64,000 nucleotides of DNA from Entomortierella parvispora E1425 (GCA_020891255.1 BQFW01000009.1:744001-808000), one strand, 5' to 3'; counted from the stretch's first letter, positions 34,205-43,600 are shown. Notes: generated by a model from the sequence alone, not told the origin. Numbers and translations: made by a program.

Positions 34205-36785
34205 TCCTGTATGCGTTTTTGCTTATTCCTGAGACGATAACGCCGATTGAATGTCGCAAGATCCCACGGACGTGCGTGTTCCCGCTGCTTTTACTATTGA
34301 TAATAAGTTGCATGATGCAGGAGTGAAGAGATGACAGGTCGATGTGCACGAGGATACAAAAAAAAAGTATTAAAAAAAAGATAGCACGAGATGAAAAGAC
34401 GAGCTGAGGTCAGTCAAAGATAAAGTCGTTCGTTGGGCGAAGTCGAATGAGTCCAGTTTCAGGGTCAGCAGTTCAAGGCGGGAGCAGGGATGATGTACCT
34501 TGTCAAAGGGAGGGGATGAGTAAACGGATGCGATCCGCGACGAGGACGAGTATCGGCAAGGAAAATGAGAGGGATTGACGGTGGGGTATGAGCAGGAGCA
34601 GAGGTGCGGACAAGAGGGAAGACAACTGAGGAGAGGAAAGGGACAGATAGAAGAAACAAATGCGCAAGAAGGGGGGGGGTTCCAGTCAGGAGAAGGGGTT
34701 TCCAGTCAATGGCAACAAAAGAGTGAGGGAGGAGGAAGAAAGGACGGGAAGGACCCTTGGTGTGTGGAGGAGGAGGAGCTAGGGAGGAGGGCAAGAATGA
34801 GGGAGATTGGCCATGCATGCACACATACACACACACACACACACATACACCGAGGGACAGATTACAGAGATGGATGAAGGGATGAAAGGAAAAGGATGAT
34901 GAACAGCGAAGGCCCATGGACCGCAGCGTGCTCTTTTTTTTCTTTTTTGCTGCCGTGAGAACGACAGTCGACAGGTGCATCGTTGTGCAGATTGTATCCT
35001 TGTGTGTGTGCTTGTTTGTATATCCTTGCCTTGCTTGCTTGTGACAGTGACCACCGTCCAAAGACAGCCAACGATAGGCACAGGACCCTCTCTCGGCCTG
35101 ACTGCCAGCGAATAGCTCGGCTCCCTTGTTTCTTCGTTGCTTTGTGTCTGTGCCCTCTTTTTCTCTCTTCTCTCTCTTCTCTCTCTCTCTTTCTCTCTTT
35201 TCTCTTGGCTCTGTCTCCTGTCCTGCATTCACATCCATTCGCCCATCTTCTCTCTCTTTAATCCCCCTTCCTTCCATCAGCACTGCACATGCACATGCAC
35301 ATGCACGACTGTCTCACACGTAGTTACAAGGATAGAACCAGCAGCGTCGACTTGTATCTGTACAGATCACACATGTCCTTTCTGCCTGCCAGATATGAAC
35401 TGTGGATTGCATGAGGTCGAGCTTTACAGACCGACCATGCCATTCTACCGCCTCTTGTCGAGTTATCGGTGCCATTAAAGCAATTCTACACCTTTATCTC
35501 AGCGTTGGTAAATCCGGCATTTTGCTCGCTGCTTCCAGTCTTGCATTCAACATCAAGTTCCATCAGAATTTACTTCAGGTTCTCTGTTGTGCCCGATCCA
35601 CTAGCTATTTCCCGTAACGGCATGCGATACTGACGAGCATCACATGCACGGGCATCGATCAGGGTAAAACAAGAACTCAACATCCACTCAATTCAAAGTC
35701 ATGATATTAGGGTCATTGTAGCCAAGACAGATAACCCGATCCCGCCGAGGGTATTTTGGCGCGACCATTAAAGACGCTGACAGTACGACTCGTCTCATGG
35801 TCATGTATCACCTTGAGGATATAACTACTAGCTGAAGGGCGATAGTGGTGGACATCGAAGGTGATTAGATTCGGAAGATATATTGCCTTCTAGTACTTGC
35901 AATAAATTACTTTCCCATTCGATCTCATGCATCATACTTTAGCATGGGCGGTTGGGGAACTGCAGATCAATGAAGGCCACGAGGCAAAGGTTGGAAATAG
36001 ATCGTTATGATTTATTAATAGTTGGCAGAATAGGCAATGGGGTGAATCTTTGTGTCGAAAAGCGCGCGTTTCTTGTCGCGTCCTAGTCGCGTCGACCAGA
36101 ACCAAGGGCCGGATTCCCCAGACTTCTTGATCTGATAACGGAAATAGCAGATTAAAAGACGCTTCAGAAAAGGACGTTACTATTGGCGAAGTATTTCTCC
36201 TCCCTCACATTGCTGCACAGAATCGGTGAGTGAACTTCCTGGATCATGATCACTTTTCAGTCTGCGTGCGGCACAAACACGGCTGTTCACCGAACATCTG
36301 TTCAACTTCATTGTTCACCTAGTTCATAGTGGCTATGGTCCAACTCTAAGAAAGGTACATATCGGTCGAAATTATTGGGTGGCGATACATGATAACGACT
36401 TCCTTGGTTGAGTTTTTGCTGGCAAATATCAAACTTCATGATACCGAGTCGAAGAACTGAGTCCGATGAAGAGTGGACACAATCGAACGATGCCAGGCCG
36501 CATGATGCCAGGCCGTGTGATGCCGGCTTGCAGATCTTTTCTTGGGTGATGATCTCTGTCGTTGTCCTATTCCATGGTCTTCAATAGGATTGGTACTGCT
36601 CAGTGACCCAAGTGGGCCCTCTCCAAAGGCAAGTTCTTAGTTTAGTACTAGAGCTACTCTGAAGCAACCCACCGTATTGGTGGGAGGCTCCGTTGCAGCT
36701 GTCTATTTGCTCGACTCAAGTGCTACTGCCAGACAAGAGCTTCAAGAGCTTTCATATGTTGTAGCAAGCGATACGTGCTTGTTCA

Positions 36786-39700
36786 TTTTTTTTTGTACAA
36801 GTCCTTTGGACCATGCAACGAGAGAACGACTTTTTTTTTTGGATTTCACTTGAGATTTTAATAAGTGATGCAGAAGGCTATTGGGCTATGGTTGTCATGT
36901 CTTGTCGGCCCGTCGATCGGACACTGTTCTTGGAACCTATTCCTACTTGCACTCTTGCCGAGGAGGGGAAGAGAAGGATGAAGAGAAAGGAAATGCAACT
37001 CACCATGATCAGTACGTCCCAAGTCGTCCAAGTTGTCCATGTCCCCGTCCATGTCCCGCTCTTCCATGTCCTCCAACTCCCTGTCCATGTCCAACTCTTC
37101 CATGTCCTCCGACTCTTCCGTGTCCACCGACTCCCTGTCCATGTCCAACTCTTCCGTGTCCACCAACTCCCTGTCCATGTCCAACTCTTCCATGTCCTCC
37201 AGCTCCCTGTCCATGTCCAGCTCTTCCATGTCCTCCAACTCCCTGTCCATGGCCAACTCTTCCATGTCCACCAACTCCCTGTCCATGTCCAACTCTTCCA
37301 TGTCCCCCAGCTCCCTGTCCATGTCCAGCTCTTCCATGTCCTCCGACTCCCTGTCCATGTCCAACTCTTCCATGTCCTCCAACTCCCTGTCCATGTCCAA
37401 CTCTTCCATGTCCACCAACTCCCTGTCCATGTCCAACTCTTCCTTGTCCACCAACTCCCTGTCCATGTCCAACTCTTCCTTGTCCACCAACTCTTCCATG
37501 TCCTCCGACTCCCTGTCCATGTCCAACTCTTCCATGTCCTCCAACTCCCTGTCCATGTCCAACTCTTCCTTGTCCACCAACTCCCTGTCCATGTCCAACT
37601 CTTCCTTGTCCACCAACTCCCTGTCCATGTCCAACTCTTCCATGTCCACCAACTCCCTGTCCATGTCCAACTCTTCCTTGTCCACCAACTCCCTGTCCAT
37701 GTCCAACTCTTCCTTGTCCACCAACTCTTCCGTGTCCTCCGACTCCCTGTCCATGTCCCGCTCTTCCATGTCCCCCAACTCCCTGTCCATGTCCAACTCT
37801 TCCTTGTCCTCCGACTCCCTGTCCATGTCCAGCTCTTCCAAGTCCTCACCTAAAACCTATCGAAAAAGGAGCAAAAGGCTAAGCAGAGGACATAAGTGAG
37901 GGTCAGTACGAGCCGACTTAGTGATCTTAATCATAGAGACAGAGAGCGAGGGCTGGAAAGAATGAGAGTAAGGAGGAAAGGCCAGAGTGCGAGTAAGTGA
38001 TAGAAGGAGAAGGGAAAAAAAACGAGAAGTCGAGATTAGTAAGAACAGATGGCTTCAACATCATCAAACAGAACAAACTTATCGTGAAGCAACATTGTGA
38101 GGATGAAAATGTTAAGGTGAAGGTGACGGTGAAGGTGAAAGGTGTTGGTGATGGTGGTCCTGTTGCTTGTGGTGGTGCCAGATGGAGAGGGAGAGGTAGG
38201 TGAAGGGTCGGGGAGAGAAAGAGAAGGAGAAAGGAGAAAGGAGAAAAGCGAAAAGCGAAAAAAAGGCGAGCACCTTTTGTGCCGCGCAACTTTTGCCAAG
38301 AGGACGAAAGGAGGGTGACGACAACGCATTGTCGCGTATTCAGTCGACTCGGACTGAATGGAGGAGAGTGGCCCGGGTCCTCGTTGTCGGGAGGAGGAAA
38401 GACACATGGTGAAGGAAGGGAAAGGGAAAGGGAAAGGGAAGGAAACGATCAGTGAGTGCGCTGATTGGTTGCTTGGATGAAGGGCTGGAAAGACATTGAA
38501 AAGACATGCAGAAAATGCGGTGGATAGACATTCAAAGCATGGAAAGATGTCAAGGGATAGAGGGAGAGAGTTGTAGTCTTTGCCCTCACCATCATCGTTA
38601 CCATCGCTATCACTATTGCCATGAAGGATGGAAGGAGGAACAGAAAAAGAGGGACAGAAAAAGAGAGAAAGACAGGTGGAGAGGGGAGACATTTACATGG
38701 TCGCCATGTCCCTCTTCCCTTTCCCTCTCCGGCCCCATAGTCCCTTCGCTCTTGTAAAGCCTCACAGCAATAAAGGACTGGGATAGTATGGAGAAGGACC
38801 ACTGCAACTGCGCTGTTGCCATCATCATGGCCATTCTCATCGTGATGAAGGAACGAAAGCTGGGTGGAAAAGAGAAAGAATGCATTTGCACAAAGGCCAT
38901 GTCCATTTTTTTTTCATTTCTCTCTCATTTTCTGACGCACTTTTTCTGTTCCTCCTTCCATCCTTCATGGCAATAGTGATAGCGATGGTAACGATGATGG
39001 TGAGGGCAAAGACGACAGCTCTCCCCCTCTATCCCTTGACATCTTTCCATACTTTGAATGTCTATCCACCGCATTTTCTGCATGTCTTTTCAATGTCTTT
39101 CCAGCCCTTCATCCAAAAGCAACCAATCAGCGCACTCACTGATCGTTTCCTTCCCTTTCCCTTTCCCTTTCCCTTCCTTCACCATGTGTCTTTCCTCCTC
39201 CCGACAACGAGGACCCGGGCCACTCTTCTCCATTCAGTCCGCGTCGACTGAATACGCGAGCAATGCGTTGTCGTCACCCTCCTTTCGTCCTCTTGGCAAA
39301 AGTTGCGCGGCACAAAAGGCTCTCGCCTTTTTTTCGCTTTTCGCTTTTCTCTTCTCTTCCAACCCTTCACTCCCCTCTTCTCTTTCCACTTTCCACTCTC
39401 CTCAACCCTTCGCTCTCATCTTCACCACCATCACCACCACCTTTCACCACGCCGCCTTTCCACGACAAGTTTGTTCCCTTTGCTGTTGCTGGACGTCTGC
39501 TCTCACTGATCTCGCCTTCTCGCTCCTTTCTCGCTCCTTTTCTCACTTACTCGCACTCTTGCCTCCTTGTCTCCTACCTCTGTCTCACAGTCTCTCGCTC
39601 TCTGATCAAAAAGAACAAGCTGTTTGGTACTCACTCTCTCCTCCGTCCCAGTTTTTTTTTTCTTTTTTCTTGATAGGTCTAGGTCAAGATCAGGATGCAT

Positions 39701-40154
39701 ATATGAAATAAACTGGCGTTGTCGTTGGGGGAGTTTTACTAACTTACTAACATACTAACTTACTAATGTTTTCATCTTTTTCACGCGGGACTCGAGGACG
39801 ATCAGGATTTTCAGGATGCAAATATGAAATAAACTGGCGTTGTTGTTGGAGGTGCCTTTCTCATAGACTAGATCATGGACTAGATCAAGGACTAGGTCGA
39901 GGACTCGAGTTTTTGAATGCCATGATCATGGTGAGTTCGCCTTCCCGTTCTTCCTCCTCTTTTCAACTTTCTCCTTGGCAAGAGTGCAAGTAGGAATAGG
40001 TACTCAAGAACAGCCCCGATCGACGAACCAACAACACAAGGCAACGATAGCTTCAATAGCCTTCTGCATCACTTATTAAAGGATCAAATGAAATCAAAAA
40101 AAGTCGTTCTCTTGTTGCATGATCCAAAGGGCATCACATACAAAAAAAAAAAAA
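36786..40154. repeat. ~3.4-kb imperfect palindrome (head-to-head inverted duplication)
   Basis: 38241-38648 is the reverse complement of 38941-39351, with about 10 differences by manual count. Exact distal matches: 36935-36959 vs 39977-40001 (25 bp) and 36857-36883 vs 40054-40080 (27 bp). Spacer 38649-38940. Confidence 0.92.
37040..37845. repeat. 36-bp minisatellite (CTCCCTGTCCATGTCCAACTCTTCCATGTCCTCCAA), ~20 full units plus three 18-bp units
   Basis: Unit count read from the periodic translations (MEELDMDRELVD, PCPCPTLPCPPT). No stop codon in any frame of the unit. Confidence 0.95.
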
Positions 40155-40641
40155 CGACAAAAAAGCTGACAATCCACTTTCAAAAGATGCAGTTCGACCT
40201 CATCACCAGCCAGGCAGGTTGCACAAGAATCATGGCATCCAGCTTTCAACAAGGCAATACACTAATATGGTTTCGTCCGCAGGTCTGCTGGTATGATCGC
40301 GACAAAGAGCGTCGTGCACAAAAACAACACACGGACCACATGTTTTGGTGCCACCGCAACCTTACTCTGAAAATTGCGCCCAATGGCTGAGAGCAATGCG
40401 CGGCTTCCTGAATTCCAAAGACGGGCAATCTTCCCAGCAACGTAACCCGTTCTGTCATTCCCCACAGTCCCCTCTCGCTCTCACCTCCGCATACACTCAT
40501 TGCTCTCTGCCACTGGGCTCAGGAAACCAGGCCGCGGCGCGTGGACAAGCTCAAAGAAACCGCTGAGTATAGGATGCATGGTGTCTATTAAAATCTAATC
40601 TATGGTTCTGAGCATCCCAATATGTCAAATTGCTTTTAGGA

Positions 40642-43600
40642 TCATGAGGGCGGCGTTGGTGGTGTGAACAACGATGGCAGGCTCGAAATGGCTCCTCCCC
40701 TTCCAGCAATGGATCCAGGACCGCCGCTGCTACCCCCAACTAAGGTCGAGGCCGCCGTGCTTCCTGTCCCGGGTCGTTTGTGTGATACAGAATTTCGCTG
40801 CACGTTCGCAGTCAAATTGCTGCTCCCATTGCTTCGGACCCTTGAAATAGGTACCATGCTAGAAGTGGACCCAGGTAATCCACGCTCTGCCACATTCAGT
40901 GACATCTGACGCCCAGCGGTTGGTCCGTGTCCACTACCGCCACTACCCCCAAAAGTCGACTCTCTTTTCTTGATCTCAGCCAAAGCCAGGACCAAGTTTC
41001 CATAGGCGCCTGAGGATCCCAAAGAATTGGCATTCACATGCATGTTGTAAAGCTCCTGTTGCTGTTGCTGACTCAGGCTTGGTGTCTGCTGTTGAAGCGA
41101 CAGTTGTTGCTGCTGCATTGCCTGTGGGGGAAAATACGAGGTTGATTTGCGTTGGGGTGGACCTGCACGAGCATGGACCGAGTTGGAAGGACTCACAAGA
41201 CTGACTGCACTTGTATTGCCATGTCTTCCGCTGGGTCCACCTCCTCGAGTAACAGCCGGACCGTCCAAAGTGGAGTTTAAGTCCACAACTGATCCTGCCA
41301 GTGAGGTCGCTCGGGATGTGCCTCTGGATCGGCCGCCAAGTGGAGAGGGCAAAAAGCTACCCAGATCAATGCTAGACCGTGCACTTCTGGCCCAGGCTTC
41401 CAAGTCGTTCACGAATCCATAGGCACCGAAATAGATCACGGCTAGATCTACTGCGACCTGCAACACGCAAAAGAAGGCCATTGAGCCTAGCAAAGCAAAA
41501 GGAGTCATCTTCTCTGAAGGCACCGCCAGTAAACAGAGGATGAAAACGGCGTTCAGGAAGCGAGAAAGATAGACAATCTTTTGAAACCTATCATACGACC
41601 TCAGATTGATCCATTTGAGCAACGAATTACACAAAAAGACCAGCGAGCAGACCACGAGAAAGTACTGTTTCGTTAAGTTGTAATCTGTCGGTCTTGCCAA
41701 GGCACCACCAGCTCCAGAAGAGGCTGAAATAGAGAGAGATCGTCTTTCCAATGGGATATCGAACCCATGAGCAAACTTTTGGTTAAAAGGAACCGAAGGC
41801 GGTATAACTCCATAAACGAGACTGTGGGCACTTGTGGCGGGACCATCGCCGACATCCGTTATATGGTGCTCCTCCTTGTAGAGGCGGATCAAATCCAAAG
41901 CGCCCATTCCGAACAAAACGATGCAAATGTGCAAAGGGAGGTGCAGGTAAGCCCATAGCTGCGAAAGCGTTGTGGTTTTGTGAAAGATCTGGACACGTGC
42001 GGGACTTCAGGTCAGCAAAAGAAGTTATGAATGTATTTATCAGCGACAATTTGGGCAAGAACTTACATCCTCCGAAAAGTCGTCAAAGTATAGCCACCAG
42101 AGAGCGTAAAGAATCACGGTCGTGAAAAAAAACAGGAGCAAGTACATGTATTGACCAGATACCCAAGCACTTGCTCCTGAACTAAGTCCGACCAACCCGA
42201 TAATGTTCTAGATATCACAGAGGCAATGGAAGAATATCAGTAATTGTCCTATAGACTAGAAAGTAAAGGTCGACAACTGAATCCTAGGTACTGCGCCATA
42301 CCTCGCCTAGGACAATGATCGTAAAGAGAGCAAACCGTTCCGGCAGGTGACTTCCTGCAAATGTCACCGAGGTTCTTCGACCGAATGAGATCAGCACAGC
42401 CACCTCGATCACAATGGTCGAATACCACATCACGTAACGCCAATCAACGTTGTGGACAAGAATCGAGAGCCCCCAGATTAACATCGCAAGTAAGTTGCTC
42501 CCGATCTGCAGCCACAATGGCGTCAAAGACTTTTTGGACCGATTCCGCCTTGCCCAAAACAAAACTAATACAAAGGGCTGTGTATTAGTGAATGTGCTCA
42601 CGGTATAGAACCACAGGAATAGGGAATACACATTTAACCCTTTTTTCCCCCCTTACCATTGCCATATTCGATCACGAGGACCCCTTTGAGAACAATATAA
42701 CTAATAATAAACCCTTTTGAGGTCTTGTCAAGGTGGTCTGAGGAGAACGCTCCGAAGGAGATGAGTGCGCAAAACTCCACGAGCTTCAATACTTTGGTGA
42801 AGAGGTCATCCATGTCATATCTTGCAGCCCAAAACGTCTGACCTGCCCACTAGTTCCAAGAAACAGAAATATATAATCTCTTGTTAGATTATAAGCGTGC
42901 AGAGAGACCATGTCGTGGCAGTGCAAAAGTGTACTTACAGTCCACCACATGATGACGAACCATCCGACATAATGGGCCAAGGCAGCTGGTGAGTGGTTAG
43001 GGAGAGCAACATGAAACAGGAGATTTGTGAGTACAGAAAATCTTGAGAAAAAAAAAGTTGCGCTTGTTGCACACAGGGATTCTTACTGCCCCCAGTGATA
43101 GGATGGTTGTGGGTAAAGTCAGTCAAGTTTGCCACGAACAGCAGGTCGTAAAACAATTCTAATATTGCAGATCCGTCAGTAAGACCTATCTCAGGAACAG
43201 TTCCATCTTGCCAGATTGTATTCCTCTTACCTAGCCAACTTGCTTTCGGCTCCTCAACAGGCATAGTCGATAGATCTGTGGTGGGTCGTCTATAGCGCTT
43301 TTTCCTACGCCTGCTCTTCTTCTCATGGTGGGATGATATTGACTCTCTCCTGACAACTGCGATGGACTCGCCGTTTAAGATTTGATCGTCTTGAGCAAAT
43401 GTAACTCCCGGTGCTAGGTACGAGACAAATGTGAAGAAGGTAAGGACTCTATGATCGAGAAGCTCGCACATGACAGAATCCAGTACTTTGCAAACATACA
43501 GTCCGGTGTGTTGTCGGTAAAGATGATCTGAACATCATAATTTCGAGGTAATTTTTCGAAGTATGACGCCAACTCCTCCTTTGTCTGAATCACCTCCACG

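Follow-up and report, generated by a model that had tools for sequence, protein, structure and literature searches.

Known palindromic loci and the Entomortierella parvispora palindrome

Recombination between the arms of palindromes on the primate X and Y chromosomes gives rise to gene conversion as well as to inversion of the spacer (PMC8327919, PMC8600007), and the orientation of the spacer differs in about half of the between-species comparisons (PMC8327919). Here, we describe a 3.4-kb inverted repeat of the fungus Entomortierella parvispora E1425, located at positions 36779-40154 of a stretch of 64,000 nt (BQFW01000009.1:744001-808000; "the window"), to which all coordinates refer unless a contig is named. 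We read it, with a probability of roughly 0.7, as a small gene-converting chromosomal palindrome from a four-locus segmental-duplication family, in which conversion is confined to the centre. As such, it is a member of the known class of gene-converting palindromes, and no new mechanism is called for on present evidence. It provides a compact, well-resolved example, on an ordinary fungal chromosome, of conversion between arms, of exchange between paralogous palindromes and of a change in spacer orientation.

Palindromes on the sex chromosomes of primates and mice (P1-P8 of the human Y and those of the X) share with this locus the inverted arms, the unique spacer, the conversion between arms and the concerted evolution; their spacers are inverted by recombination between the arms, and rearrangements are concentrated at their centre (PMC8327919, PMC8600007, bioRxiv 10.1101/800185). 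They differ in size (10 kb to more than 1 Mb), in an arm-to-arm identity of >99% along the whole arm and in the testis-expressed protein genes they carry, whereas the arms described here measure 1.2-1.9 kb, are homogenised over the inner 0.43 kb alone (in the loci on contig 9) and contain no evident protein gene. In this family, unlike in the sex-chromosome palindromes, sequence is also exchanged between paralogous palindromes. The features that identify a gene-converting palindrome are present as inverted arms around a unique spacer, derived changes shared within a locus and a spacer that occurs either way round; the arms are not near-identical throughout, the outer parts of the contig-9 loci being 33-87% identical.

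Two other kinds of loci bear a resemblance. Endogenous hairpin-RNA loci, such as the hpRNA genes of Drosophila and the palindromic small interfering RNA (siRNA) loci of budding yeasts with RNA interference (RNAi), produce a single transcript through both arms, as well as Dicer products. The likeness lies in the inverted repeat, the short loop and several hundred bp of potential double-stranded RNA; the difference is that one transcript spans both arms in such loci, whereas the sequence signals point outward here. Foldback transposons, for their part, have long inverted arms of unequal lengths with tandem sub-repeats of differing copy number, as is the case here. The family described below has no defined termini and no target-site duplication, and it consists of four old copies with co-duplicated flanks.

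Structure of the palindrome

Repeat searches recovered the inverted repeat where a first-pass annotation, made from the sequence alone, had placed it. Its two core arms (38235-38668, minus strand, and 38921-39357, plus strand) consist of three abutting inverted pairs: 38473-38668/38921-39116 (96% identity), 38332-38474/39117-39259 (99%) and 38235-38331/39261-39357 (96%). The innermost arms are 252 nt apart, separated by a spacer (38669-38920) that is unique and asymmetric according to both the repeat search and k-mer orientation. Within the left core arm are a CCAAT box (ATTGG at 38464-38468 on the plus strand) and a (TTCCCT)n tract, and its outer end is CT-rich; the CCAAT of the right core arm is at 39123-39127. 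In an alignment of eight arms (see below), the two core arms of the window are 97.6% identical, differing by 12 substitutions and two indels (of 1 and 2 nt), which matches the "~10 sites" and the 1-bp indel of the first-pass annotation.

The same annotation described a gradient of identity; the window-by-window profile rather shows a step, from 93-100% over 38925-39345 to 33-58% within some 60 nt. Beyond the step, there are patches of 57-87% identity, and one section, 39694-39874, does not align at all. The outer arms, taken to be ~1.2 kb each, are in fact unequal in length (left, ~1.45 kb; right, ~0.8 kb). In the left arm, a unit of 36 nt is repeated about 22 times as a minisatellite (37043-37853, minus strand); the corresponding place in the right arm is taken up by an unrelated sequence of some 180 nt (39694-39874) and by three repeats of 12 nt. 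The exact islands reported for the outer arms were found again as the inverted pairs I5, I7, I9 and I12, while the outermost shared stretch is the inverted pair I4 (36779-36837/40096-40154), which ends at A/T tracts. The terminal block of the left arm (36779-37011, minus strand; pairs I4, I5, I7 and I8) is homologous to the end of the right arm and finishes at a T9 tract (A9 when read outward).

A four-locus family with two arm types

We searched the genome (38.9 Mb in 20 contigs; the window corresponds to contig 9, 744001-808000) and found the whole palindrome at three further loci: contig 9, 728432-731712 (the 728-kb locus, inverted and about 52 kb away from the locus in the window); contig 9, 923080-926724 (the 923-kb locus); and contig 11, 1520401-1523318. 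The structure is far beyond chance, and an assembly accident is extremely unlikely: the structure recurs at these three other loci with different, internally consistent levels of divergence.

There are two types of arms, termed S (short; the right arm in the window) and T (with the minisatellite, which is limited to this type; the left arm in the window). The three contig-9 loci are S-T pairs, with cores that are 97.6, 98.0 and 99.5% identical and outer arms that are 75-81% identical where they can be aligned; on contig 11, both arms are of type S and share 97.7% identity over 1474 bp. An S-specific segment (39690-39870, plus strand), in which two direct repeats of 60 nt (39690-39749 and 39811-39870) surround a tandem array of four octamers resembling TACTAAC (39736-39766), occurs in only five copies genome-wide, all of them in S-type arms. 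The old inverted duplication proposed in the first-pass annotation is supported.

The genes next to the four loci are unrelated between loci, and none of the loci lies in a mating-type or other special region. The extent of the duplicated segment varies by locus and, at the 728-kb locus, takes in part of a neighbouring gene. At the locus ends, we found neither sharp boundaries nor target-site duplications: the homology fades gradually, to a different extent at each locus. A 16-nt island motif and the S-specific block were confined to the four loci in the genome search. Together, these properties argue that the four loci are low-copy segmental duplicates and not a transposon-like family. The insertion of a non-autonomous transposon, of the foldback type or another, at four sites would be consistent with the unrelated neighbouring genes and with arms carrying tandem repeats of differing copy number. 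We nevertheless consider such an origin very unlikely: there are only four copies, 6-20% diverged from one another; they are without sharp ends or target-site duplications; flanks of different length were co-duplicated, including the gene fragment at the 728-kb locus; and the 16-nt island motif is restricted to these loci. The match to a dispersed repeat family, which the first-pass annotation had named as a point that would count against its interpretation, is thus present only in a weak form, as four segmental duplicates, while a transposon-like family was not found.

The arms are collinear out to the poly(A) tract, as first described, for the locus in the window only; in the other two arms of type T, the final 130 nt are different. 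At 36779-37011, the terminal block of the T arm in the window is 82-84% identical to all S-type ends and 54-57% identical to the other two T-type ends. This similarity is at odds with the locus tree that the remainder of the arms gives, and is a hint of another ancient exchange at the T-arm end of this locus. It is the last ~130 nt of this T arm (36779-36910) that are S-like, the remaining two T arms having an end of their own in common.

Concerted evolution of the core

When the six core arms of contig 9 are compared, at least 11 variable positions or indels are common to both arms of one locus and absent elsewhere: four at the 923-kb locus, three substitutions and a deletion in the (TTCCCT)n microsatellite at the 728-kb locus, and two or three at the locus in the window. 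Not one interior core site separates the S from the T arms. In a maximum likelihood tree of the core, arms pair by locus (support values of 97/95, 90/93 and 100/100), whereas the tree of the terminal block shows the opposite, with all S copies grouped together (97/97) and the T copies outside. The core has thus evolved in concert. Because derived states can become common to the two arms of a single locus only if one arm is copied onto the other, we take these patterns to show that arm-to-arm gene conversion keeps the core alike; the suggestion to that effect in the first-pass annotation is borne out by locus-specific variants in both arms of the paralogous loci.

Between contigs 9 and 11, the core is 83-85% identical, the same level as the outer S arms (85-86%), which argues that selection is not the main cause of the near-identity of the core. 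A section inside the core, 39225-39300, is only 57-81% identical between the contigs (50-nt windows) and includes a 24-nt indel, yet it is near-identical in the six contig-9 arms. Purifying selection alone, acting on the core as a shared regulatory module or exon that is conserved without copying, would find an argument in the CCAAT box and the CT-rich block, which are among the best conserved parts of the core between the two contigs (90-98% in 50-nt windows). It would not account for derived variants, including the microsatellite deletion, that are common to both arms of one locus and absent elsewhere, nor is it in keeping with the modest identity of the core as a whole between contigs; we hold this explanation to be highly improbable. 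The locus calls for caution when conserved promoters or leaders are read as signs of selection, or when such paralogues are used as markers.

The outer edge of the homogenised tract is identical in the three contig-9 loci and coincides with CT-rich sequences where S and T differ by indels. At 0.43 kb, the tract in these loci is much shorter than the 1.47 kb homogenised in the S-S locus of contig 11. Most simply, conversion would reach as far as homology allows. If conversion halts where old heterology starts, the sharp step in identity needs no functional explanation.

This variation in length also bears on the proposal, made in the first-pass annotation, that the core is under selection to form a hairpin of ~400 bp or is an siRNA locus. 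In the explicit form considered here, read-through from core to spacer to core would yield a double-stranded RNA stem of ~430 bp that feeds RNAi, and selection for pairing would keep the cores alike. Mucoromycota possess RNAi, and the 1123-nt centre (38235-39357) would, if read through, fold into an almost perfect hairpin of -920 kcal/mol, although a fold of this kind follows trivially from the inverted repeat itself. Against the proposal, the homogenised length varies (0.43 versus 1.47 kb), with old heterology marking its limit; conservation of the core between contigs 9 and 11 is ordinary; and the processing-like signals on both arms (described below) all point away from the spacer. Moreover, a search of Rfam returned no family above chance (MIR529 scored 24 bits against a threshold of 75). 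Selection for a hairpin is therefore not supported, and a hairpin-RNA locus is, in our view, unlikely.

The published E. parvispora E1425 assembly combines Nanopore with Illumina reads and was polished with Pilon (PMC8759367). Long-read chimeras could in principle create a palindrome, and short-read polishing, which can blur near-identical repeats, could create the near-identity of its core. Such an artefact is hard to reconcile with four loci of different, tree-like divergence, with the unique spacer and with the diverged outer arms; variants specific to one locus and present in both of its arms run counter to what cross-mapping during polishing would bring about. We regard it as extremely unlikely.

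Spacer orientation and transfer between loci

The spacer of the 923-kb locus is flipped relative to its S and T arms when compared with the locus in the window and the 728-kb locus. The centre of the palindrome in the window (38235-39351) aligns to the 923-kb locus on the plus strand, with 96.4% identity, while both outer arms align on the minus strand; the flip was confirmed by k-mer orientation. Between these two spacers, there is no substitution in 254 positions and only one 3-nt indel, despite outer arms that differ by ~7%; the spacer of the closer sister, the 728-kb locus, differs from that of the window at six of 254 positions. The absence of substitutions in the spacer, set against the divergence of the outer arms, indicates that the central segment was recently transferred between two loci lying in opposite chromosomal orientation. 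The flip itself would be accounted for either by that transfer or by a core-core crossover within one locus: the two spacer orientations come from a comparison of paralogous loci, not of individuals, and the event may be a transfer rather than an inversion in place.

One could go further and see in the palindrome centre a still-active recombinational switch, where the spacer is turned, or swapped between loci, in living nuclei. Such a switch would alter the end of the spacer that each outward unit, S or T, adjoins, and, in a variant of this proposal, read-through in one of the spacer orientations may make a hairpin RNA. The one line of support is the occurrence of the spacer in both orientations among paralogous loci, together with the recent exchange between two of them, and we consider an active switch improbable.

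Outward signals and coding potential of the arms

On the outward strand of all eight arms, GATCATG is followed by GTGAGT and, about 60 nt later, by a pyrimidine-rich stretch and AG. The boundaries of this intron-like segment are kept in all eight arms, and its interior length varies. In the window, the putative introns (GTGAGT to AG) are of 61 nt in the T arm (36943-37003, minus strand) and of 63 nt in the S arm (39931-39993, plus strand), the 3' part of the latter being a conserved island, island c (39977-39995). Further out, every arm has an ATTAAA followed by A tracts on the same strand: the end of the S arm (40056-40154, plus strand; pairs I4 and I5) comprises island d, in which the ATTAAA lies at 40075-40080, and two A tracts, A7 and A13 (the latter at 40142-40154). 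The S arms have, in addition, a CT-rich stretch of 340 nt without ATG (the leader-like 39358-39693, plus strand, in the window, which includes island a at 39544-39563), a cluster of TACTAAC motifs and several ATGs, each followed by a stop within a few codons. It is plausible that the arms are outward, spliced, probably non-coding or decayed transcription units. As the splice-like and poly(A)-like signals point outward, the core looks like an upstream, promoter-like region shared by both units.

Two related blocks of ~50 nt, within 39674-39750 and 39816-39860, each contain two ATGs stopped after two to three codons. The five S copies show little or no variation in them, against a surrounding divergence between contigs of ~15%; extra constraint on the two blocks was not significant over independent branches (Spearman 0.26, p = 0.10).

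No common reading frame survives in the arms, in agreement with the first-pass annotation. Between the contig-9 and contig-11 S copies, 13 of 16 indels are not multiples of three; the T array at the 923-kb locus is frameshifted about six times by 1 nt, the array of the 728-kb locus has a 10-nt insertion at its end, and the three T copies have no frame in common. Exons were read in place, without joined or spliced models, in all the searches. The long open reading frames (ORFs) of the minisatellite, in all frames, and those of both arms had no Pfam match, and a word-indexed protein search with the acidic and the Gly/His-rich frames of the minisatellite (the other four frames were not searched) yielded no homologues. 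Two scans for relatives in metagenomes gave only seven chance matches, in high-GC bacterial contigs. A divergent pair of protein-coding genes was considered and rejected, given the frame-breaking indels, the lack of a Pfam match and the lack of homologues for the two frames searched. All five S copies could encode a C-terminal Cys-Ile-Thr-Tyr before a stop codon; we rejected it as a prenylation box, there being no start codon in the shared frame, and the upstream frame shifts between copies.

The minisatellite in the window is open in all frames. Its least variable translation, comparing the window with the 728-kb locus, is a Gly/His/Gln-rich repeat of 12 residues. In the array of the 923-kb locus, the frame switches about six times by 1-nt deletions, and the acidic frame has stop codons; these switches and stops argue against translation of the minisatellite.

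Islands a and c are mutually reverse complementary over 16-18 bp in all eight arms. The complementary sections are 39544-39563 and 39977-39995 in the S arm, and 37985-38006 and 36941-36959 in the T arm (where island a as a whole, pair I9, spans 37979-38009 on the minus strand). The two islands bracket the variable repeat region and lie 410-1410 nt apart. Changes on both sides are seen at pair 1 (C-G to T-A in one T arm) and at pair 17 (C-G, T.G or T-A), and five positions are mismatched in some arms. The islands could pair over a long range as an RNA helix that covers the AG of the intron-like segment, or they could represent one DNA motif present twice in inverted orientation. The predicted fold contains the helix, and the region is no more stable than its shuffles (z = -0.42); G.U pairs, with three cases for each strand, give no call as to which strand would pair.

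A model for the palindrome

In the model we favour, the arms would be two old, diverged paralogues (S and T) of a probably non-coding unit, and enough homology for recombination between the arms would remain only in the centre, that is, in the two 0.43-kb cores and the 0.25-kb spacer. Non-crossover repair between the inverted cores would copy one arm onto the other and hold them 97.6-99.5% alike, while an exchange across the centre, within a locus or between oppositely oriented loci, would turn or replace the spacer. The outer limit of the homogenised tract would be set by old heterology (the CT-rich indels between S and T), not by a function of fixed length. If S and T are transcribed outward from the shared core, conversion would keep both units under the same control.

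Several points weigh against this model. All evidence comes from one assembly. The two arms of the locus in the window form no supported pair in the core tree and are the least homogenised (2.4% apart). The core diverges by 2.7-4.5% between contig-9 loci, compared with 7-8% in the outer arms between the more distant loci, which could reflect some constraint on the core in addition to transfer between loci. Finally, outward transcription and a promoter function of the core are deduced from sequence signals, and the match to a branch point in the last intron-like segment is weak.

Sequences next to the palindrome

The flank at 40155-40535 (plus strand) lies outside the palindrome in the window and is co-duplicated with the S arm in other loci, as seen from the comparison of loci. 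Further to the right, the window contains an ORF of 430 codons (40642-41934, minus strand), which is membrane-protein-like and without a significant Pfam match. Part of it, 41116-41610, is duplicated at 86% identity beside the palindrome of the 728-kb locus, where 580 bp are missing. Within the co-duplicated flank, beyond the A13 tract, the block 40287-40340 is 95% identical between contigs 9 and 11, above the level of its surroundings.

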